In this document: positions 5,401 to 22,237 of the stretch, piece after piece | How the letters are laid out: the number at the start of each line of letters is the position of its first letter | How positions within the stretch are numbered: position 1 is the stretch's first letter | Assembly (NCBI RefSeq): GCF_000142905.1 | Contig: NW_013657678.1 | Span: forward strand, 124,001 to 188,000 | Length of the DNA stretch: 64,000 bases | Origin: Thecamonas trahens ATCC 50062 | Taxonomy: Eukaryota; Protista; Apusomonadida | Direction of reading: 5' to 3' | The notes under the pieces: model-generated | Told to the model about the DNA's origin: nothing | Databases searched by the model: none | What the model saw: the letters and a program-made list of their open reading frames with translations, nothing else | Translations under genes and position numbers: made by a program

Positions 5401-5749
5401 CGAGGCGAACGTCGGTGACAGGGTCGGTACGCCCATGATGTTGGCGACAGGCGCACATGCATCCTCTGGTTTGTTAGCTACACCCACACTCATCCGCAGA
5501 CTGTGAGTAACCATGCCTTCTTGATCGTGGCACCATCCACAGGGGCGAGCGTGACCTGCGGGAGGCGCCAAAAACGCCCATCGCGAAAGTTTGAAAACTT
5601 TGGCCGACAGAGAGGGGCAGGCAGGGGGGAGGGGGGGGGGGGACAGGCAAAGGTAGCGTACTGAACCACTCGTCGGCATGGGCGTCTGTGGCGTCGATGT
5701 CGTCAAAGTCGACAAACTGCGGTGCCTCGAACTCGTACGTGTTGGCCAT
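2495..5749 (-). CDS. TPX2: TPX2 microtubule/Aurora-A-binding protein; exon 1 5749-5662, intron 5661-5466, apparent frameshift at 5367-5370
   Basis: Aurora-A-binding N-terminal motif YEFEAPQFVDF...ADEWF; repeated LTxPxxPxF/PFxF motifs; GDYGVPKV; C-terminal FRKSLDFKAQPIRHY...LTVPVSPQF. GTACGC donor, GCTAAC branch point, CAG acceptor. Confidence 0.9.
4788..4880 (-). repeat. 15-bp coding tandem repeat (EDVIA x~5-6) within TPX2
   Basis: tcggcgatgacgtct units on the + strand. Confidence 0.9.
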
Positions 5750-6034
5750 GATGGGGCCGGAGCCGAGAGGGGTTGCGAGAGGAGTCAGAGTCGATAGTCG
5801 GTGGTGCGAGTGAGAGTGGGAGCTGCTGCCGGCTGCCGCTCGTTGGTGCGCTTTTTCCCGGGCGGACGTGAAATAGCCAATGAAGCGCGAGAACAAGACG
5901 TGTGTGGATTTGTAAAGGTAGTGATGAGCTGCAAGTGCTAGTGTTGGTAGTGATGGTGGCAGTAGGCGGAGGAGGGGGAGTGGTGGTCCAACAAGGAAGG
6001 GGACCATGGGGTTGGGGCGGCAGGCGGCTCTCGC

Positions 6035-7345
6035 TCACGGGTGCGGCTCGGGCAGCGACGGTGACGAAAAGGTGAGCGATGAGGTGCGGGCAATGATATC
6101 GTCGACGGCACGAACGTGGAGGACCTTGTTGCACACAGAGTGTGAGACGAGGGCAAGCGCGTCCTGATCATTTGGCGGCAGGTGGGCGAGGATGCAGGCC
6201 ATGACGTTGTCGTCGAGCGACTCAAGCCGGGTCGTGACTCCTCCGCCAGACGCTGGGAGTGCACCGACCGAGGCGAGAGCTGCCATGGCACGAGCCGGCA
6301 GCTTGGGTGCTTCTCGCGTGGCTTGGATCGGAGTCGGGCCTGTCGGCTGCCCGGAGAACGCCGAGACGGTCATGCCGCGCTCGGCGGCAACCGAGGCGAT
6401 GACTTCGGCTTGTCGGCGGCGGTTGCGCTGCTCGCGCAGCCGGGCCGTGCACTGGCAGACCTGGCGGTCGCGGCGACGAGCCCGTCGGGTAAGGTCATCA
6501 TCGTCGCCAGATCGTGCGCCACCGGCATCGTCGCACTCGTCGCCGGCCAGCCCGGACGATCGCGGCGACACCCGCTTTCCGCCGCACACCGCACAACGAG
6601 ACTCGACCTGCAACGCCTGATCGGAAGCGACTTGGGTCGGCGCTGCCCCCAGCCGGACACTTGACGGCTCAACCGACGAGCACCGGCGGCGGCGAGATGC
6701 CCGGTGGCGCATCGACGACGACGACCGGCTTGGCGCGCGCGACCGGCGCGACCGGCTCGCCGCTGACGACGCCGACGCTGACGCTGACGCCGACGCGCTC
6801 GAGTGCTCGCCCTCGCCCAGGACAGCAAGTCCGGTACTGCGGTCTCGTTCTAGCGACCGCGACCGCGACCGCGACCGTGACCGAGAGAGTGACCGCGAGC
6901 CCGAGCCCGAGCCTGGCCCCGGGCGCATGCTACGGGCAGCGACGGCGGGGTGCAGCGCGAGCGGAGGCGAGGAGGCTGACGAGGACGGATACGACGACAG
7001 CAGAGCCGACGAGCACGACGAGAGAGACAGCGGGTGCTGCGAGATAGCCAGGGGCGTGGTGGCCGGAGTGCTGGCCGGAGTCGGTGCCGTCGGACGTAAA
7101 GTGGGCAGCGGCGGAAGGCTGAGTCGCACTCGCTCGCCGAGGCCGATCGAGCCTTCCGGGGCACAGCCCGACCTGGCGACGCGTCGCCGACCCAGACTGC
7201 GGAAATCGGGTCCAGCCTCGGTTGTCTGCACGTCCATGGTCACAGAGTCGAGGGGTATGAGTGCACACATTGGTTCGGTAGCAATCGGCGTAAGCGAGCC
7301 CTCGTAGGTGGTGTGGACCACATTGGGCCGCGGCGGGAATGGCAT
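6035..7345 (-). CDS. Low-complexity (S/R-rich) protein with a C-terminal F-box-like motif
   Basis: 436-aa ORF; RSRSRS tracts; LESLDDNVMACILAHLPPNDQDALALVSHSVCNKV resembles the F-box consensus. Confidence 0.55.
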   Translation of the reverse strand: MPFPPRPNVVHTTYEGSLTPIATEPMCALIPLDSVTMDVQTTEAGPDFRSLGRRRVARSGCAPEGSIGLGERVRLSLPPLPTLRPTAPTPASTPATTPLAISQHPLSLSSCSSALLSSYPSSSASSPPLALHPAVAARSMRPGPGSGSGSRSLSRSRSRSRSRSLERDRSTGLAVLGEGEHSSASASASASASSAASRSRRSRAPSRSSSSMRHRASRRRRCSSVEPSSVRLGAAPTQVASDQALQVESRCAVCGGKRVSPRSSGLAGDECDDAGGARSGDDDDLTRRARRRDRQVCQCTARLREQRNRRRQAEVIASVAAERGMTVSAFSGQPTGPTPIQATREAPKLPARAMAALASVGALPASGGGVTTRLESLDDNVMACILAHLPPNDQDALALVSHSVCNKVLHVRAVDDIIARTSSLTFSSPSLPEPHP

Positions 7346-7788
7346 TGGCCACGTTGCGGCCGCGCTCGCTTTGTGCGCTGGAGACGATCCAGACGACGGC
7401 TACGGCGAACCGAGTGTAATCGCAGGCAGCTACCTGATGGGTCTACGGGAAGTGCTTGCGCTTTACTGCTTGCGCAGACTCGTCTCTGCTGTGCTTGTCT
7501 TGACGGCAAGAGGGGGCGTGGGACGAGTGCGGGTGTCTCCTCCGCCACAGCCCGCTAGCTGCTGAGAGTGTTCTCCACCGGGGTTTTGGGGCTTTTTTCC
7601 CCGCACCTGGTCAAGGAGGCAAGCGGTTGCTTGTTTTTCTTTGTTCGCGTTTGGATGTGGAGGTGAGAGTGAGAGTGAGAGTGAGAGAGAGTGTGTGAGG
7701 GATGTGGTGTGCATGAGCGTGTGGAGTGGTGCGAGTGCGAGTGAGTGTGCGTGGAGCAGTGGAAGAGGGTACGTGCATGGTGGCCCGT

Positions 7789-14225: not shown

Positions 14226-15404
14226 ATGGCTGAATCCGTCGTCGAGGCAGATTCAGAACTGCTGCCACCGACAGGCATCCGCAATCCAGGCGCATCAGAC
14301 TATCTGGCTGTTCTCGTTCAGGCGCTGACCCATGTGCCACCCATCCGCAACCGCCTGCTATTCTGGGACAATCCGGATGGCGACAAGGTGGCCGACGCCG
14401 TCGCTGCTGGCACACCACTCTCCGATGCTGTCGAGGCCTGTGCCAGGAGCGCGATGGAGGACGACCATCCGTCGTACCGCATCACAGGCGCACTGCAGCG
14501 GCTAATGGCGCGCTGCATCGCGGGCCCGCGCGAGCAAGCGGCAGAGCTTCGCGATCTCGCCGCCGCGTTTGGTTGGTCCGGGGCCGACCTCGCCCAGGGC
14601 CACGACGCCCAGGAGCTGTATGCGGTCCTCATCGGCGCGCTCGACTCGGAGCTCGCCGCTGACACCGTCGTCGAGGTGTCGGGCGAGGCTGTCGGTCCAT
14701 CTCCCAACCTCATCTCGTCACTGCTCACGGTCTCGGTGAAGCGGACCATCACCTGCTCTGAGGGGCATGTTAGCGAGCGGGCCGATCCTGCGTTCTCGCT
14801 CCAGGTCCGTGTTGCCGGCCAGCTGTCGCTCGTGGCGTCGCTGCATGACACCTTTCTCACGTCAGAAACGTTTGACGGCGACAACCAGTACTCGTGCTCA
14901 CAGTGCGGCGTCCACCGCGATGCCATCATGCGCCACTCGCTCGATCCCGACCTCCCACCGGTCCTCGTCTTCACACTTGCGCGCATCGACTTTGACTTTA
15001 TCACCTTTACTCGCCGAAAAGTCAACTCGTCGTTGGAGATTCCGGCCACACTGAGCAAGGCTGACCTGCTCAACAGGCCCGACGCCGGTGCCGATGCCGA
15101 CGTCGATGCCGATGCCGACGCCGACGCGCCCGCCTACCAGCTCGCTGCAGTTGTGTGCCACAGCGGCACCGCCAACGCCGGCCACTACACTGCACACGTG
15201 CGTGATCCGGCAAGCCAGACGTGGTGGCTCGCAGATGACGCCAACGTCGAGCCGTCGCCTCTTGCCGACGGCGAGTGGGATCCTGTGAACGACACCGGCT
15301 ACATCGCGCTCTACACGGCCGTCAGCGACGATGACGGTGCTGCGCTCACCCCGCGCGACCTCGTTGCGCCGCGGCTGTGGGAGTTGGCCCAAACCATCAG
15401 GTAA
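14226..15404 (+). CDS. USP (peptidase C19) family protein, probable pseudo-deubiquitinase (catalytic Cys->Asp)
   Basis: Cys box GIRNPGASDYLAVLVQAL; GHDAQEL; FDGDNQYSCSQC; LPPVL; His box VCHSGTANAGHYTA...WWLADDANV. Confidence 0.85.
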   Translation: MAESVVEADSELLPPTGIRNPGASDYLAVLVQALTHVPPIRNRLLFWDNPDGDKVADAVAAGTPLSDAVEACARSAMEDDHPSYRITGALQRLMARCIAGPREQAAELRDLAAAFGWSGADLAQGHDAQELYAVLIGALDSELAADTVVEVSGEAVGPSPNLISSLLTVSVKRTITCSEGHVSERADPAFSLQVRVAGQLSLVASLHDTFLTSETFDGDNQYSCSQCGVHRDAIMRHSLDPDLPPVLVFTLARIDFDFITFTRRKVNSSLEIPATLSKADLLNRPDAGADADVDADADADAPAYQLAAVVCHSGTANAGHYTAHVRDPASQTWWLADDANVEPSPLADGEWDPVNDTGYIALYTAVSDDDGAALTPRDLVAPRLWELAQTIR

Positions 15405-16746
15405 ACCAGTTATGTGAGCTGGTGTCGTGTCCGTCCGGCACCAAGTACTCGGTGACAGTTGTCGCGGCGGAGACCGGGAACAGGCCCTTGTCCCCCGACG
15501 AGTTGAGTCCGAGGTACCAGTCGCTTGATGAGTAGGCGAGGACAGAGATGTGTTCGTCAGCTTTGAGGGACAGCTCGTCATCGTCCTCGGCCGGTCGCGA
15601 GCTGGCCGCAGCCATAATGGCAAGTACAGGCGTGGCGCACATGACTGGGAACAGACCCTGGCTTCCGTCGGCCTTCGCCCCAAACCACCACGAGCCATTC
15701 GCAAACTGGTATACATCAAGGTACTCACCACGTTCAAATCCGAGCTCGCCGTCTTCTTGCGGCGCCCACGTGTACACCGCGTACGCCTTGCACAACAAGC
15801 GAGCGTCGGTGCTTTCTCCCTCGGATGATGTCTCGTACTCGTACTCGAGGGTCTCGGGCGTCGACGTGGCCGCCAGCAGCACCGTCTCTTCGCCGCCTGT
15901 CGAGAGCCCACCCGCAGCTGCAATTCGCTCGGCGAGCAGGACGTATGACTTGACCAGATCGGGTTCGATCTCTGTACTCTCGCCCGCGTCGAGGTCTGGG
16001 ACGCTCGCTGCAAGCAACGCAATGTCCGGAACGACAATTGGCACCGGTGACGGCGCCGACGGATCGTCGTCGTCGGCATACGGCAGCTCAGGCACTGGCG
16101 CACTGCTGGATGACGTGGCGGCGCTGATACTCGCAAACGCCGCCGCTTGCGCCTCCTGCGCTCGCCGCAGGGCGGTCGAGTACGACGCCGACACGGCCAC
16201 AGGCGCTCGCGCCGCGAGTTTGAGCTGTGACGGGCGGGCAAAGAAGCCGCGGCGTCCGCGGATGCGGCCAAAGTAAAACACACCATCCGGCACCCCGTCG
16301 GTTGGGCCGGCAAGCTTGGCGCCCTTGCGCGGAATCGCCGCCGCCGCGCCGCCCGTCGCCACATCAAGCTTCTCCGCCAGCACCGCCGGCGACAGCTGGG
16401 CGGCGAGGACGCCGACCCAGAGACCCGGCGCCGACTCGACATAGCCCACATACGCCACCGTGCCACGGCATGCGAGTGCCGGGCAGATCACCGTGTCGCC
16501 CACGCCGACCGAGCACGGATGCTGCTCCGGTGCATACCTCGGACAGAGCGGTGCCCTGATCCACATTGACACCTGCCCCGCGCCATTCCCATCGCTCCGG
16601 CTACCGCCACCACCACCGCCACCACCAATCCGGCCGCTCCGATCATCTTGCCTCCGTCCGCGCCTGCGCCTGGACCTGTCCTTCCGACGCGTGCCCTTCC
16701 TTGGTCCTTTCCTTCCAACTGTGTCTCCTCTGCTCCGACCTGTCAT
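15397..16746 (-). CDS. CAP-Gly plus two SH3 domain protein
   Basis: GTVAYVG...PGLWVGV...GPTDG...GVFYF...RGFFARPSQL (CAP-Gly); two SH3 with ELxF/L...WW/WY.G...GLFP. The 5' end is near a gap, so the start is uncertain. Confidence 0.8.
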   Translation of the reverse strand: MTGRSRGDTVGRKGPRKGTRRKDRSRRRRGRRQDDRSGRIGGGGGGGGSRSDGNGAGQVSMWIRAPLCPRYAPEQHPCSVGVGDTVICPALACRGTVAYVGYVESAPGLWVGVLAAQLSPAVLAEKLDVATGGAAAAIPRKGAKLAGPTDGVPDGVFYFGRIRGRRGFFARPSQLKLAARAPVAVSASYSTALRRAQEAQAAAFASISAATSSSSAPVPELPYADDDDPSAPSPVPIVVPDIALLAASVPDLDAGESTEIEPDLVKSYVLLAERIAAAGGLSTGGEETVLLAATSTPETLEYEYETSSEGESTDARLLCKAYAVYTWAPQEDGELGFERGEYLDVYQFANGSWWFGAKADGSQGLFPVMCATPVLAIMAAASSRPAEDDDELSLKADEHISVLAYSSSDWYLGLNSSGDKGLFPVSAATTVTEYLVPDGHDTSSHNWFT

Positions 16747-16970: not shown

Positions 16971-17127
16971 NNNNNNNNNNNNNNNNNNNNNNNNNNNNNN
17001 NNNNNNNNNNNNNNNNNNNNNNNNNNNNNNNNNNNNNNNNNNNNNNNNNNNNNNNNNNNNNNNNNNNNNNNNNNNNNNNNNNNNNNNNNNNNNNNNNNNN
17101 NNNNNNNNNNNNNNNNNNNNNNNNNNN
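16971..17127. other. Assembly gap (N run) flanked by poly-C
   Basis: N bases. Confidence 1.
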
Positions 17128-17241: not shown

Positions 17242-19818
17242 ATGGCCTCGGCCGAATGGACCTGCGCCACATGCACCCTCGCCAACCCGCCAAGCTCGGC
17301 GGTGTGCACCACATGCTTTGCCCTCCGCCCGGTCACTCCAGGCACGGTGCTCTCAGCGCTATCAAGCCCGGCTCGGCCAGGGTCATCGCCGCTGGGCAGA
17401 GGCTGTGATCTGGCTGCTATCCCACACCAGGGCGAGGAGAGGCTGCCGCCGCACTCGCCGCGACCGCTGCCATCGCCGCGCCTCCCGCCGCGGCCGAGGG
17501 ACACCGCGCTACCGGCTCTGGCGGATGCGCTCAGGGCCCTGTCGCTGGATGCCGGCACCAGTGCTGGCTCATCGTCGTCGGGGATGCACGGCATGGCTGT
17601 TCCGATGTCCTCGCCCACCACTACCGATCCGCCGCTAATGGTCTCGCTCTCGCGAGGTGGTTCCGTCGACGTCGTCGATCCGTGGGCCTGCCACATCTGT
17701 ACCTTCTCCGGCAACGCGCAGGGCGCGTTGGCGTGTGAAGTGTGCGCCGCGCCACGACCGGCTCGTGCACCGCACCGAGGCGCGGTTCGCGATGGCGTCT
17801 GGGCCTGCCCAGCCTGCCAGGCTCGCAACGAAGGCGCCGCTGTCTTTTGCACCGTCTGCCACTTTCCCGACAACATTGTTGTCCTCGACAACGCGCGCTC
17901 GCCGCGGCACCAGGTGCTCGCACCGCCACCAGATGCGCTTGAGGCCGACATCATGGGCGCATACCCACTGCCGCACGGCGCGGGCGTCATCTTTCGGGTC
18001 TGGGCTCCGTCGGCCTCGCGCGTCTGCGTCGCCGGTGTCTTTAACAACTGGTCGCCCACCATGCACGTCCTCGAGGCCGAGGCCGACTGCGAGCACTTTT
18101 CGGGCGTTGTGCCATCAGCAGCCGTTGGCGATGCTTACAAGTACGTGGTCTTTGCCCACGACGCCTCGGGCGCCGAAGTCCCGCTCTGGCGCAACGACCC
18201 GTGCGGCCGCTGGCTCTGCGTCCTCCCGGCAGCTGGCGCGAGCGAGAGCGACGCGCCCGAGCCGGGGGTCGCTCCGCCGCATGTCGGAATTCGCCATGAT
18301 CTTGTCTACGACTCCGCGGCGTTTACCTGGACCGACAGCGACTTTGTCCGCCCGCCGTACAACGAGCTTGTGCTGTACGAGCTCCACATCGGCGGCTTTA
18401 CCCCACACGGAACCTGGCTTGCCGCCATCGATCGGCTCCCGTACCTTGTCTCGCTTGGCATTAATGCCATCCAGCTGCTACCTCCTACGCAGGACGCGCA
18501 CACCATTTGCTGGGGCTACGACCCGGTCTCACTCTACTCGCCGCATGACTCGTTTGGCACGCCCGACGAGATGAAGTCTTTTGTCGACGCCGCGCACGCC
18601 CACGGGCTTGCAGTCATCCTTGACTGGGTCCCCAACCACCTTTCTGTCCGCTCCGTGGTCCGCTCGTTTGATACCGCCGACGCTGCGTCGGCTGGTCCAT
18701 ACATCTACGCCGAACCGGAGCTTCGGTCGACGCCGTACGGTCCACGGCCGAACCTTGCGTCGCAGCACGTCCAGGCCTGGCTCATCCGCTCGGCGCTGAT
18801 GTGGCTCGATGAGTACCATCTCGACGGCATCCGAGTCGACTCGACAGGCACACTCCGCCGCAGCGAGCCGGCTTTGCACGCCGGCGCTTCGGCCCGGGGC
18901 GCTGCCGCCGACCTGGTGGAGGCCTGGGAGTTTATGCAGGAGCTGACGTCCATTGTCCGTGCCCGCTTTCCGGACCGACTCCTCATCGCTGAGGATCTCA
19001 ACTCGGAGCCGCTGCTCACCTACGGTGGCGCTGGCTTTGATACCCAGTGGGACCCTGTGTTCTGCTCGATGGTAGCGCACCAAATGACGCTCGCCTCGGA
19101 TGCGCTGCGGTCAATGGATGCCATCGCATCGGCTATCGGCCGTGTGGCCGGCGGCGGAGCGCCGTCGTCACGGCTCATCTACACCGAGTCGCACGACACC
19201 ATTCCAGCCGATCGCGAGTCGCGCCTCCCACACGCCATTCAGCACGGCGGCGAGTCGTTTTTCGCCCTACGTCGCACCCTCCTCGCCGCCGTCCTCCTCC
19301 TCACGTCGCCGGGAATTCCCATGATTTGCGCTGGCCAGGAAGTCCTCGAGAACCATGCGCCGCCGTGGCCGACTCCGCTGTATCTCGACTGGTCCCGGCT
19401 TGAGGCCGCTTCTAGCGACGAGGCTCTGGCGCGGACCCTCTGCACCCTTCATACCTTCCAGACGCTCATCAGCCTCCGGCGCAACGTCCACGGCTGTACC
19501 GGTGGTCTCACTGCCGATTCCGTCCGGGTCTTCCACACCAACGACGCTGCCAACGTTGTTGCCTATCACCGCTTCCACCGCGGTGGGCGTGGAGACGACG
19601 TTGTCGTCATCTGCAACGTCTCCAACACGCCATACGCCGAGTACGCCATCGGCGTTCCGCGCTCAGGCGTCTGGCATGTCCGCCTCAGGTTTGAAGACGA
19701 GCCCGACAGCGTTTCTCGCCTCGTTGCCGCCCGCGGAGCCTATGACCTCTTCCCGTTCTCACTCACCCTCTCTCTCCCGCCGTACTCGGCGCTTATATTG
19801 TCTCAAGACCCGCTGTGA
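17242..19818 (+). CDS. 3x RanBP2/NZF zinc finger - CBM48 - GH13 alpha-amylase-family enzyme (branching-enzyme/TreZ-like)
   Basis: WTCATCTLAN..CTTC, WACHICTFSGN..CEVC, WACPACQARN..CTVC; MGAYP..GVIFRVWAP (CBM48); LYELHIGGF, LGINAIQLLP, WGYDP, AHAHGLAVILDWVPNH, DGIRVDST, LIAED, YTESHD. Confidence 0.9.
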   Translation: MASAEWTCATCTLANPPSSAVCTTCFALRPVTPGTVLSALSSPARPGSSPLGRGCDLAAIPHQGEERLPPHSPRPLPSPRLPPRPRDTALPALADALRALSLDAGTSAGSSSSGMHGMAVPMSSPTTTDPPLMVSLSRGGSVDVVDPWACHICTFSGNAQGALACEVCAAPRPARAPHRGAVRDGVWACPACQARNEGAAVFCTVCHFPDNIVVLDNARSPRHQVLAPPPDALEADIMGAYPLPHGAGVIFRVWAPSASRVCVAGVFNNWSPTMHVLEAEADCEHFSGVVPSAAVGDAYKYVVFAHDASGAEVPLWRNDPCGRWLCVLPAAGASESDAPEPGVAPPHVGIRHDLVYDSAAFTWTDSDFVRPPYNELVLYELHIGGFTPHGTWLAAIDRLPYLVSLGINAIQLLPPTQDAHTICWGYDPVSLYSPHDSFGTPDEMKSFVDAAHAHGLAVILDWVPNHLSVRSVVRSFDTADAASAGPYIYAEPELRSTPYGPRPNLASQHVQAWLIRSALMWLDEYHLDGIRVDSTGTLRRSEPALHAGASARGAAADLVEAWEFMQELTSIVRARFPDRLLIAEDLNSEPLLTYGGAGFDTQWDPVFCSMVAHQMTLASDALRSMDAIASAIGRVAGGGAPSSRLIYTESHDTIPADRESRLPHAIQHGGESFFALRRTLLAAVLLLTSPGIPMICAGQEVLENHAPPWPTPLYLDWSRLEAASSDEALARTLCTLHTFQTLISLRRNVHGCTGGLTADSVRVFHTNDAANVVAYHRFHRGGRGDDVVVICNVSNTPYAEYAIGVPRSGVWHVRLRFEDEPDSVSRLVAARGAYDLFPFSLTLSLPPYSALILSQDPL

Positions 19819-22134
19819 CACGCTTGGTCTGCGTCTCACTTCCGGTGGTGTCTATGACAACGCTTGACTTGGCCCGCTTGTGCCGTGGAAGGTCATCGTC
19901 TGTGGACTCACGGCGGCGCTTGTTGCTGCCAGCCAATGTAGCCCGGGTCCGGTGGAGGAACAGCCGTGCTACGGGCGACGCGCCTGCCACAGCGAGCAGG
20001 CTCTGCAGTAAGGCAGCGGGCTCGTCTACAGCGGCAAGCTCGGCGTCCAGCACCGCCCACATTCGCGCCTGGGTCTCCTCCTCCCAATTGAGGCTCGCAT
20101 CAAAGACAGGCTCGCTGCCGTGGATCGGCGCTGCCAGCAGTGTTGCACCTGTGCTTGCGCGAAGCTCAGCAAAGTTGGCCAGCATGGCATATCCCGCGTG
20201 CTGTGCAAAGCTCGCCAGCGTCGCCGTGCGGTGATCATCCGTCAGCGTCAGCTCGGAGCACTGCAGCAACCGTGCGAGCGCAGTGACTGTCCTTTCCGGC
20301 CAGACGGTGACCAGACATGTCACCAAGTGGCCGAGATCGTCGGGCGCGAGCGCAGCGATGCTTGGCCACACGCTGCTGTCGTTGGTGGCGAGAAGCCAGG
20401 CTGCCAAACTCGCACCTGGCCAAGTCGAAGCCAGCGCGTCGCGAAGTGGCGATGCCCGGCCCATGACGGCGTCGATAATGGCGACGCGGTCAGGCTGAAG
20501 GCAGCGCTGCAGCCATTCCGCGAGCGCGGTCGGCGAGTAGCCCTTGCGGCCATCGACGGCGAGAACGTGCGAGACGAGGGCGCGGAGCGTATCGCGATCA
20601 GAGCCTGCACTGGCTGCGTCACCTTCCACCAGACGGCGGAGATGCCGCCCAAAGAGCACTAGTTCGTCGGGCACATCGGTGTGACTAGTTCCGCACTGCT
20701 GCACTTCGGCTTGAGCGGCAGAGTCGTTCTGACGCCCAGAAGCAGCCTCTGGGAGGGCTTGCTGGGATGGCAGCAGCCGCGACAGCCGGGAGCGAAGCTC
20801 CGGCGAGAGCGGTGCGGCGGCAAAAACAGTTTTGGGCGATGGAATCAAGCCTGCAGCGACAACAGCGCCGACTGCAGCAGATGCTCGTGCTTTTGGATCT
20901 GGTCCCATCTCGGCGCCAGCCGCCAAAGAGCTGAGCACTAACGATGCGAGCGGGACAAAGTCCGGCAGCGAGTGGCGGAGCAGGAGCGCGGCAGGTTCGA
21001 GACGCGCCGTCTCGTGCGGCGCACCAGTAAAGGTGAGCCAGTCGCTAACAAGCGCGGTGCCAAGCTGGTCAACCCGATCCAGCCCTAGCTGCAGTCCAAG
21101 GCCGACGAGCCAGCCCGCGAGCATCCATGGCGGAACGGTGGCTCGGCTCCGGGCGCGGAGGCATCGAACAGCAAACCGGATGGCGGAAGTGAGCTCGGCT
21201 AGCGTGGCGTCGCTACGGGCAGTGCTCCAGCCCCGGGAGGTGACGAGCCAAGTCTGATACCGACCCTGGCTGCCGACCTGAACGTGGCCTGCCATCCACT
21301 CGAGCCGCGCTGCGAGCTGCGGATCGAGCCGGTAACGGCAAAAGACCGATGCTGCCGCTGCCTCGTGCGCGATCTGCCACTCGGGGAAAGGCGCAGTCAG
21401 TCGAAGCACGGCGTCTGCACCTGCCGGCTGCAGCGCGTCAGGCAGCTGAAGCGCGAGGCGGGAGGTGAGCTGCTGCACGCTTGTCCGGAGCTGAGTATGG
21501 CCGCGGCTGCCAAGGCTGGGCTCCATCTCGAGCAGGGCAATGAGGCAGGCGGCAAGGACTGGCGGCGCCTCAGCAGCGAGCCAGGCTGCTGCCGGCTCGA
21601 GGGCGACACAGAGCCAGCCCAGAGTAGCAGCAGCGAGCGGGCCCATGACCGCCGGAGCCAAGGTGGAGGCAATGAGGCCGAGTACATGTGCAAAGCGGAC
21701 AATGCGCATGCGAAGGAGGTGGTCGACAAGGCGCAGCGCCGCCATCTGTGCAGACGGGCGGACGACTCGCCATCGGTTCGTGACGAGCCACGCGAGCCGA
21801 TCGGCGCACCCAGCGTAGCCATCGGTAACCGCATGCGGCAGCAGCACCAGCAGCTCGTCCTGTGCCGCCACATCGGCGCCTGCCGCCATCACACCATACA
21901 TGATGCCCACACCAAGCCGCGCGGCCACCGCCGCCCCGCGCGCCGCCGCCTCTTGCACAGCTTCGGCCGCTGCTTCGGCCTCCTTCCCGGCGACGAGCTG
22001 CTCTAGCACCGCATACGCCGCCTCCCACTCGCCGTCAATCTCCGTGTCGCGGGCGTCGAGCCGAGCATACACCCGCACAGGCGATGTTGGAGGGGCCGCA
22101 GCTGGAGCGACGACAGCAGCGGCATGTTCCCGAT

Positions 22135-22174
<40 letters not shown>

Positions 22175-22237
22175 CCCCTCCTTCCGCCCTCTTCCTGCCC
22201 GCAAAGACCCGATGCCATGGCGCTTGTCCGATTCCAT
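19793..22237 (-). CDS. INTS3: Integrator complex subunit 3 / SOSS-A homolog (divergent)
   Basis: HVQVGSQGRYQTW, AIRFAV, PWMLAGWL, LVSDWLTF, LEPAALLLRHSL and SLNWEEETQARMW align by eye with INTS3 motifs. Confidence 0.75.

Follow-up and report, generated by a model that had tools for sequence, protein, structure and literature searches.

A GH13 enzyme of apparent bacterial ancestry with RanBP2-type zinc fingers, and a putative ubiquitin-reading arm, in Thecamonas trahens and other eukaryotes

The NZF subgroup of RanBP2-type zinc fingers is characterized by four cysteines, a tryptophan before the first of them, an asparagine between the two cysteine pairs, a Thr-Phe or Thr-Tyr dipeptide and, within the second CxxC, a hydrophobic residue, and these features jointly bind the Ile44 patch of ubiquitin (PMC11372445). 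TRABID and CAPN15 each have one finger that provides the binding, with avidity coming from the others; RanBP2 fingers also have documented roles that do not involve ubiquitin (PMC11372445). In mammals, HOIL-1 attaches ubiquitin to unbranched glucosaccharides and protects against polyglucosan, and, for this glucan ubiquitylation and for the polyglucosan diseases, how ubiquitin is read on glycogen is an open question (PMC9016349). In this report, we describe a gene of Thecamonas trahens ATCC 50062 whose product joins three RanBP2-type fingers to an enzyme of the GH13 family; the gene lies in a stretch of 64,000 nucleotides (contig NW_013657678.1, positions 124,001 to 188,000 of the forward strand) that is called the window here, and positions are those of the window. 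We know of no enzyme in which a glucan-active catalytic domain is coupled with a domain that binds ubiquitin, and, to our knowledge, ubiquitin-based glycogen quality control has so far been described solely for HOIL-1 and malin of mammals.

The coding sequence (17242-19818, + strand) is a single exon that specifies 858 residues without a signal peptide, and its frame runs from the ATG at 17242 to the stop codon at 19816-19818 with no interruption; a protein identical to this product is present in public collections (P0001). Pfam places three zinc fingers, a CBM48 and an intact GH13 domain in this one open reading frame (ORF), as an earlier note made from the letters of the DNA had described. 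In the architecture and ancestry of the protein, as set out below, we have high confidence. The best overall explanation for it would be a cytosolic accessory alpha-glucan enzyme equipped with a ubiquitin-reading NZF arm, a reading to which we give an even chance. No description of a finger-GH13 architecture was found in the literature searched by accession, domain names and topic. Thus, the earlier note's statement that no such protein had been described holds for the papers searched, but not for public databases, which already contain such sequences (XP_001748900.1/A9V892 and the proteins of Arcella and Pterocystis). Zinc-finger modules and NZF-enzyme fusions are known; it is the pairing with GH13, and the GH13 lineage itself, that is undescribed in the searched literature.

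The enzyme part opens with the CBM48 (17953-18201, + strand; PF02922, 44.2 bits), which is modeled with a predicted local distance difference test (pLDDT) score above 95. The GH13 (beta/alpha)8 barrel follows on the same strand, with approximate limits of 18355-19506 from Pfam (PF00128, 72.8 bits) and from an alignment to the GlgB structure 5gr1; the all-beta Alpha-amylase_C domain (19540-19803, + strand; PF02806, 38.8 bits) completes the protein, with beta strands at residues 760-854 of the model. Conserved regions I-IV of the family are all present, with the motifs DWVPNH (18622-18639), GIRVD (18826-18840), IAED (18982-18996) and ESHD (19186-19197), all on the + strand. The nucleophile Asp is D533 (18838-18840), the acid/base Glu is E584 (18991-18993) and the stabilizer Asp is D652 (19195-19197), and the catalytic triad that had been read as RVD, AED and SHD is indeed intact. 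Across an alignment of 55 family sequences (A2), R531, D533, E584 and H651 never vary, and D652 is conserved to at least 90%. Residues 235-858 have pLDDT values mostly above 90 in an AlphaFold model made from this 55-sequence family alignment, in which the linkers are disordered. When the model was compared with the PDB by Foldseek, there were at least 500 matches, all of those listed being branching enzymes, and the top ones had target-normalized template-modeling (TM) scores of 0.82-0.85. Over the full length, the profile that matches best is likewise that of a branching enzyme, from Rhodothermus (345 bits).

We conclude that the window enzyme represents a branching-enzyme-like yet distinct, uncharacterized GH13 lineage, most of whose members are bacterial. 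With GlgB (GH13_9), including the short three-domain forms (the Rhodothermus branching enzyme, PDB 8zqa and 6joy), it shares the order CBM48-GH13-Alpha-amylase_C, the fold and all of the catalytic residues, but the identity is just 21-24% and the N-terminal zinc fingers belong to the window protein. Under the NCBIfam equivalog models for canonical GlgB, the best score is 206 bits for NF008967, whose cut-off is 577, followed by 182 bits for TIGR01515, whose cut-off is 464. Further, the GlgB rows of the tree described below form their own clade (100/100), and the window family lies across a branch supported at 100/99. Unlike GlgB, the window lineage has many secreted-looking bacterial members and falls on the side of the GH13 tree that holds TreZ (GH13_10). 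TreZ carries the motif AESDLN, and IAEDLN after the acid/base Glu of the window protein resembles it. Assignment to TreZ was nevertheless rejected: the TIGR02402 score, 186 bits, lies far under the cut-off of 538.8, and the match stops at residue 615; the C-terminal domain is Alpha-amylase_C (PF02806) and not the TreZ-type DUF3459 (PF11941); and none of the three PF00128 loci of the genome is TreY-like. Eukaryotic GBE1 (GH13_8) shares the overall three-domain fold, and both enzymes reside in a glycogen-storing cell; the window protein matches human GBE1 with an E value of 2e-20, as against 5e-209 for the genuine GBE1 of this genome, which is a separate gene (G000 C45, L002:1998-3965). Identity with canonical GlgB or with GBE1 was accordingly rejected as well. 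As judged from sequence, chain transfer (branching) and hydrolysis are about equally likely as the reaction of the window enzyme.

The origin of this lineage was examined with an exhaustive HMMER search, which returned 516 relatives below 1e-30, and a maximum-likelihood tree (LG+G4 model). All 11 of the 11 eukaryotic rows, among them Monosiga brevicollis, Arcella, Pterocystis and several metagenome eukaryotes, form a single clade nested among bacteria (100/99). Its sister is P0130 (99/95), a protein with a lipoprotein-like N-terminus whose contig is bacterial (sigma-70, MerR and anti-sigma-type kinase genes), and the nearest ESM Atlas clusters are bacterial throughout. By a crude heuristic, signal-peptide-like N-termini occur in 64 of 118 non-eukaryotic relatives, versus 0 of 11 eukaryotic ones. 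No glg or starch-utilization genes were found around three bacterial relatives (Nibricoccus, a Tara Phycisphaerae metagenome-assembled genome and P0143). We conclude that the eukaryotic GH13 module appears to derive from a single bacterium-to-eukaryote transfer, and the earlier note's proposal of horizontal acquisition from bacteria is borne out by the nesting of the clade.

At the other end of the protein, PF00641 (Zn_ribbon_RanBP) matches three stretches (33.3 bits, cut-off 27), and the NZF core of four Cys, a Trp and an Asn is present in all three fingers. Finger 1 (F1; 17257-17316, + strand; residues 6-25, WTCATCTLANPPSSAVCTTC; PF00641 stretch 6-31) is of the RanBP2 type. It reads TL..T and therefore has no NZF ubiquitin-binding signature; its own pLDDT is 64-74, and its nearest solved fingers are those of RanBP2/Nup358, Nup153, TRABID and MDM2/4. 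The linker between F1 and finger 2 (17338-17676, + strand) is disordered and rich in Pro, Ser and Ala (pLDDT below 50 over residues 33-152), and neither its sequence nor its length is kept in the orthologue from Tara Oceans. Finger 2 (F2; 17683-17745, + strand; residues 148-168, WACHICTFSGNAQGALACEVC) is of the NZF type and is predicted to bind the Ile44 patch of ubiquitin. It alone combines TF or TY with a hydrophobic residue (TF and V, as compared with TL/T in F1 and QA/V in F3), and the solved fingers that it matches, Npl4, TRABID/ZRANB1, TAB2/3 and Vps36, are all ubiquitin binders. The signature previously ascribed to F2 is present, with its TF and its V; a correction of detail is that the spacer between the Cys pairs has 11 residues rather than the canonical 10. 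Finger 3 (F3; 17800-17859, + strand; residues 187-206, WACPACQARNEGAAVFCTVC) is again of the RanBP2 type, QA..V without TF, and its best PDB matches are the RanBP2/Nup358 fingers and the NZF of HOIP (RNF31; E 4e-5). RanBP2 fingers of the RNA-binding, ZRANB2 type have the pattern N-F-x-x-R; its absence from all three fingers rules out that reading.

The conservation of this arrangement is best seen in the eukaryotic relatives. The closest is the Tara Oceans orthologue P0122 (881 residues, 57% identity, co-linear), encoded on a 5.1-kb contig beside SUFU-like and tetratricopeptide-repeat genes; it has three fingers in the order of the window protein (PF00641, 45.6 bits) and the same Pfam domains. 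On the metagenome contig L017, the real ORF (5437-7716, + strand; 759 residues) has three in-frame fingers arranged as in the window protein; the public gene call (P0129, 664 residues) begins at an internal ATG, and the real ORF adds two fingers to it. In Pterocystis sp. and Arcella intermedia, Trinity transcripts (EukProt) bear one or more fingers and the enzyme in single complete ORFs. The proteins of Monosiga brevicollis (XP_001748900.1, UniProt A9V892), Arcella intermedia and Pterocystis sp. belong to the same eukaryotic GH13 clade and carry RanBP2-type fingers at the N-terminus; their identity is 38-48%, and they have one or two fingers versus three in the window protein. Their entries are unannotated or automatically named, and the proteins are uncharacterized. 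The Monosiga protein and P0132 differ in having a C-terminal CBM20 added and no TF motif. As a side observation, one Pterocystis transcript (P0275) is a longer isoform than another (P0127), with a 21-residue insertion directly before the ENHD catalytic motif; the insertion, which would disturb conserved region IV, probably stems from an intron left in the transcript or from alternative isoforms.

The finger signatures, given in order, are TL/T, TF/V and QA/V in the window protein, TH/I, TY/M and LH/E in the Tara protein, and ST/S, TF/I and HQ/V in L017. Arcella has TF/I and YT/F, Pterocystis a single TF/M and P0131 a TF/I; Monosiga and P0132 have no TF. A TF or TY with a hydrophobic residue therefore occurs in six of the nine finger-bearing members, and in the three-finger proteins it is the middle finger in every case. 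Spacing is likewise kept, with 39 residues between F2 and F3 in the window protein, 40 in the Tara protein, 41 in L017 and 40 in Arcella. The resulting layout, a TF/TY-hydrophobic NZF, about 40 residues, a second finger, 64-78 residues and then the CBM48, is found in four lineages. Because it recurs in this manner, we take the finger-GH13 fusion to be real, old and conserved, and not an artefact of the gene model.

The main argument for ubiquitin binding as a selected property is that the position of the TF finger is conserved over a range of 40-60% identity in the catalytic domain. From such sequence evidence, we regard ubiquitin binding by the eukaryotic NZF-GH13 family as fairly probable; for the window protein itself, the prediction is evenly balanced. 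Several observations weigh against a ubiquitin-reading glucan enzyme. TF-hydrophobic fingers make up about half of the non-array RanBP2 fingers of the genome, and, because they are so common, one TF finger in three is not statistically striking by itself. Because of the 11-residue spacer, the structural Asn of F2 comes one position late (TFSGN versus TFxN), and the pLDDT of F2 is low (41-49) in comparison with the moderate values of F1 and F3 (61-74). Two early-branching members, Monosiga and P0132, have fingers without TF; a match of the N-terminus of Monosiga to the ubiquitin-associated domain (15 bits, E 0.023) falls short of the cut-off of 22.4 and was not used as support; and another eukaryotic member, P0126, has no finger in its called ORF. 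On the enzyme side, the curated GlgB and TreZ models score far under their cut-offs, and the gene neighborhoods of the three bacterial relatives give no functional hint.

Some of these points would fit an explanation in which the enzyme and the fusion are real and the fingers are generic RanBP2-type modules for protein binding or localization, directed to a glycogen-associated protein, Ran or another partner, much as NEMO is bound by the non-ubiquitin ZnF of HOIP. F1 and F3 are without TF in all of the three-finger proteins and most resemble the RanBP2 and Nup153 fingers, Monosiga and P0132 have no TF finger at all, the window F2 is atypical and modeled with low confidence, and RanBP2 fingers are on record in roles apart from ubiquitin (PMC11372445). 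This explanation nonetheless leaves the retention of TF/TY plus a hydrophobic residue in six of nine members, always in the middle finger of three, to be accounted for, as well as the exclusive matching of F2 to ubiquitin-binding NZFs in the PDB; the lack of N-F-x-x-R in all three fingers also tells against it. We consider it somewhat unlikely.

Alternatively, the fingers might bind ubiquitin in order to sort or regulate the enzyme itself, by delivering it to an autophagosome, a multivesicular body or the vacuole (as in a glycophagy-type process) or through coupled mono-ubiquitylation that controls its turnover. The evidence for ubiquitin binding serves this proposal just as it serves a ubiquitin-reading arm on a glucan enzyme, and the two are fitted alike by the present evidence. 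NZFs function in sorting by ESCRT-II/Vps36 and p97-Npl4, both of which are among the matches of F2, and glycophagy has been discussed as a route for ubiquitin-marked glucan (PMC9016349). We judge sorting or self-regulation of this kind to be improbable.

Highly improbable is a gene-model artefact, in which the fingers would be a separate upstream gene or an untranslated leader and the true start would be MGAYP (17953): an ATG at 17953 directly precedes the CBM48 and an assembly gap lies upstream of the ORF, but the frame 17242-19816 is without any stop, P0122 and L017 keep the fingers in frame, in this order and with the F2-F3 spacing, the Trinity transcripts of Pterocystis and Arcella unite finger and enzyme in a single complete ORF, the stretch FPDN(I/L)VVLD(N/S)AR after F3 is common to the window protein and its orthologue, and the G/C bias at codon position 3 persists across the finger region. 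Indeed, G plus C at this position is 0.72-0.79 across the finger, linker and enzyme segments alike. A start of the window protein at MGAYP is unlikely because its relatives keep the fingers in frame and transcriptome ORFs of two other species carry finger plus enzyme. Bacterial contamination was ruled out as well: the scaffold is 680 kb long, the flanking genes are a CAP-Gly/SH3 gene and an Integrator-3-like gene whose composition the coding sequence matches, and the enzyme is fused to eukaryotic fingers.

The assembly gap, 157 N at 16971-17127 between long C/G homopolymer runs, sits in the interval of roughly 500 nucleotides that separates the finger-GH13 gene from a divergent gene for a protein with CAP-Gly and two SH3 domains (15397-16746, - strand). 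It ends 114 nucleotides upstream of the ATG at 17242. Since the upstream frame stays open through the gap, the window protein may extend further in the 5' direction; a longer protein is disfavored because the Tara orthologue begins at the equivalent place, five residues before its finger 1 and just 52 nucleotides past the preceding gene. On the 3' side, the coding sequence overlaps by 26 nucleotides (19793-19818) with the 3' end of a convergent ORF of 814 residues (19793-22237, - strand), which has a Pfam match (57 bits) to the N-terminal domain of Integrator subunit 3.

Returning to a ubiquitin-reading arm on an accessory glucan enzyme, we can outline how such a protein might have arisen and how it might work. 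A bacterial GH13 lineage would have been acquired, of which the C-terminal 620 residues (CBM48, barrel and beta-sandwich) are the putative descendant. The signal peptide would have been lost in the eukaryotes, and most of them would have gained an N-terminal arm that is flexible and bears zinc ribbons of the RanBP2 type. The core of this arm appears to be the tandem of an NZF with Thr-Phe/Tyr and a hydrophobic residue, about 40 residues, and a second finger. The enzyme is predicted to cleave alpha-1,4-glucan by the GH13 double displacement, with D533 as nucleophile, E584 as acid/base and D652, and either to transfer the cleaved chain (branching or disproportionation) or to hydrolyze it. A weak contact between the NZF and the Ile44 patch of ubiquitin may be reinforced by the flanking fingers, through avidity or through a second contact. 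The arm of roughly 235 flexible residues could then concentrate the enzyme on ubiquitin-marked glycogen particles or glycogen-bound proteins, or sort it together with them. A reader-effector for ubiquitin marks on glucan is a meaningful proposition because HOIL-1 ubiquitylates glucosaccharides in mammals. A dedicated role on ubiquitylated glycogen is nevertheless doubtful in our estimation. The earlier note's interpretation, a reader-effector that targets such glycogen or its proteins, is supported in part: in the architecture, in the bacterial ancestry of the GH13 and in the TF signature of F2 and of the orthologous fingers. Equally speculative is its extension to the choanoflagellate, the amoebozoan, the centrohelid, Thecamonas and their uncultured relatives as a group, in which glucan remodeling would be guided by ubiquitin, the NZF reading ubiquitin on glycogen with poor branching, or on proteins attached to it, and the GH13 domain then repairing the glucan by branching, or trimming it.

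The remainder of the genome (28.7 Mb, about 65% GC) bears on the word “accessory”. A complete canonical glycogen set, namely a GT3 glycogen synthase, a phosphorylase, GDE and GBE1, is encoded at other loci, as is one plain alpha-amylase, and the window protein is therefore an extra enzyme. The glycogen synthase match (G000 C38:334585-336495, - strand; 848 bits) includes one in-frame TAG, which may reflect an intron, an error of assembly or a break. A 1171-residue open frame elsewhere (G000 C64:44508-46946, + strand) has three CBM20 starch-binding modules and is a possible glycogen-targeting protein; additional CBM20 matches lie on C7 and C53.

TF-hydrophobic fingers are fused to various partners in this genome: a calpain, an OTU1-like protein, a ZZ protein, a Ras/Roc GTPase, a WW protein and an ankyrin-IBR protein. 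The calpain (L004:3911-6844, + strand; Peptidase_C2, 257 bits) has two N-terminal NZF-type fingers (TL..V and TF..A) in an architecture like that of SOL/calpain-15. A frame of 1371 residues (L011:1699-5811, - strand; G000 C11 at about 180.7-184.8 kb) combines NZF-type fingers (TL..A and TF..M) with ankyrin repeats and an IBR match; it looks like an NZF-bearing RING-between-RING (RBR) E3 ligase and is loosely reminiscent of components of LUBAC, the complex that assembles linear ubiquitin chains. In a 400-residue ORF (L009:1671-2870, - strand) there are seven RanBP2 fingers with the N-F..R pattern typical of RNA-binding fingers, and five of these share one sequence (WDCAACSGHNFGSRSVCRDC). The array suggests a recent tandem amplification.

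What these results imply depends on the fingers. If the proposed role on ubiquitin-marked glycogen were true, ubiquitin-based glycogen quality control would be ancient and would have a dedicated reader-effector enzyme that animals lack. Should the fingers fail to bind ubiquitin, what is left is a domain-shuffled accessory amylase or branching enzyme of an ordinary kind. The NZF-GH13 fusion, conserved in several eukaryotic supergroups, is a concrete and inexpensive object for tests, with a soluble finger module and a well-folded catalytic module, and the change of TF to AA is predicted to separate their functions. The analysis also documents a GH13 lineage, placed between GlgB and TreZ, that had not been described before. 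Further, it points to the domestication of a bacterial lineage with many secreted-looking members, in which a signal peptide would have been swapped for eukaryotic targeting fingers.

Among known systems, the organization of the window protein can also be compared with that of TRABID/ZRANB1, calpain-15 (SOLH), HOIL-1 and HOIP. In these proteins, as in the window protein, flexible linkers connect a catalytic domain with an N-terminal array of RanBP2-type fingers, only some of which carry TF. The catalytic partner in those cases is a protease, a deubiquitinase or an E3 ligase, whereas in the window protein it is a GH13 enzyme.

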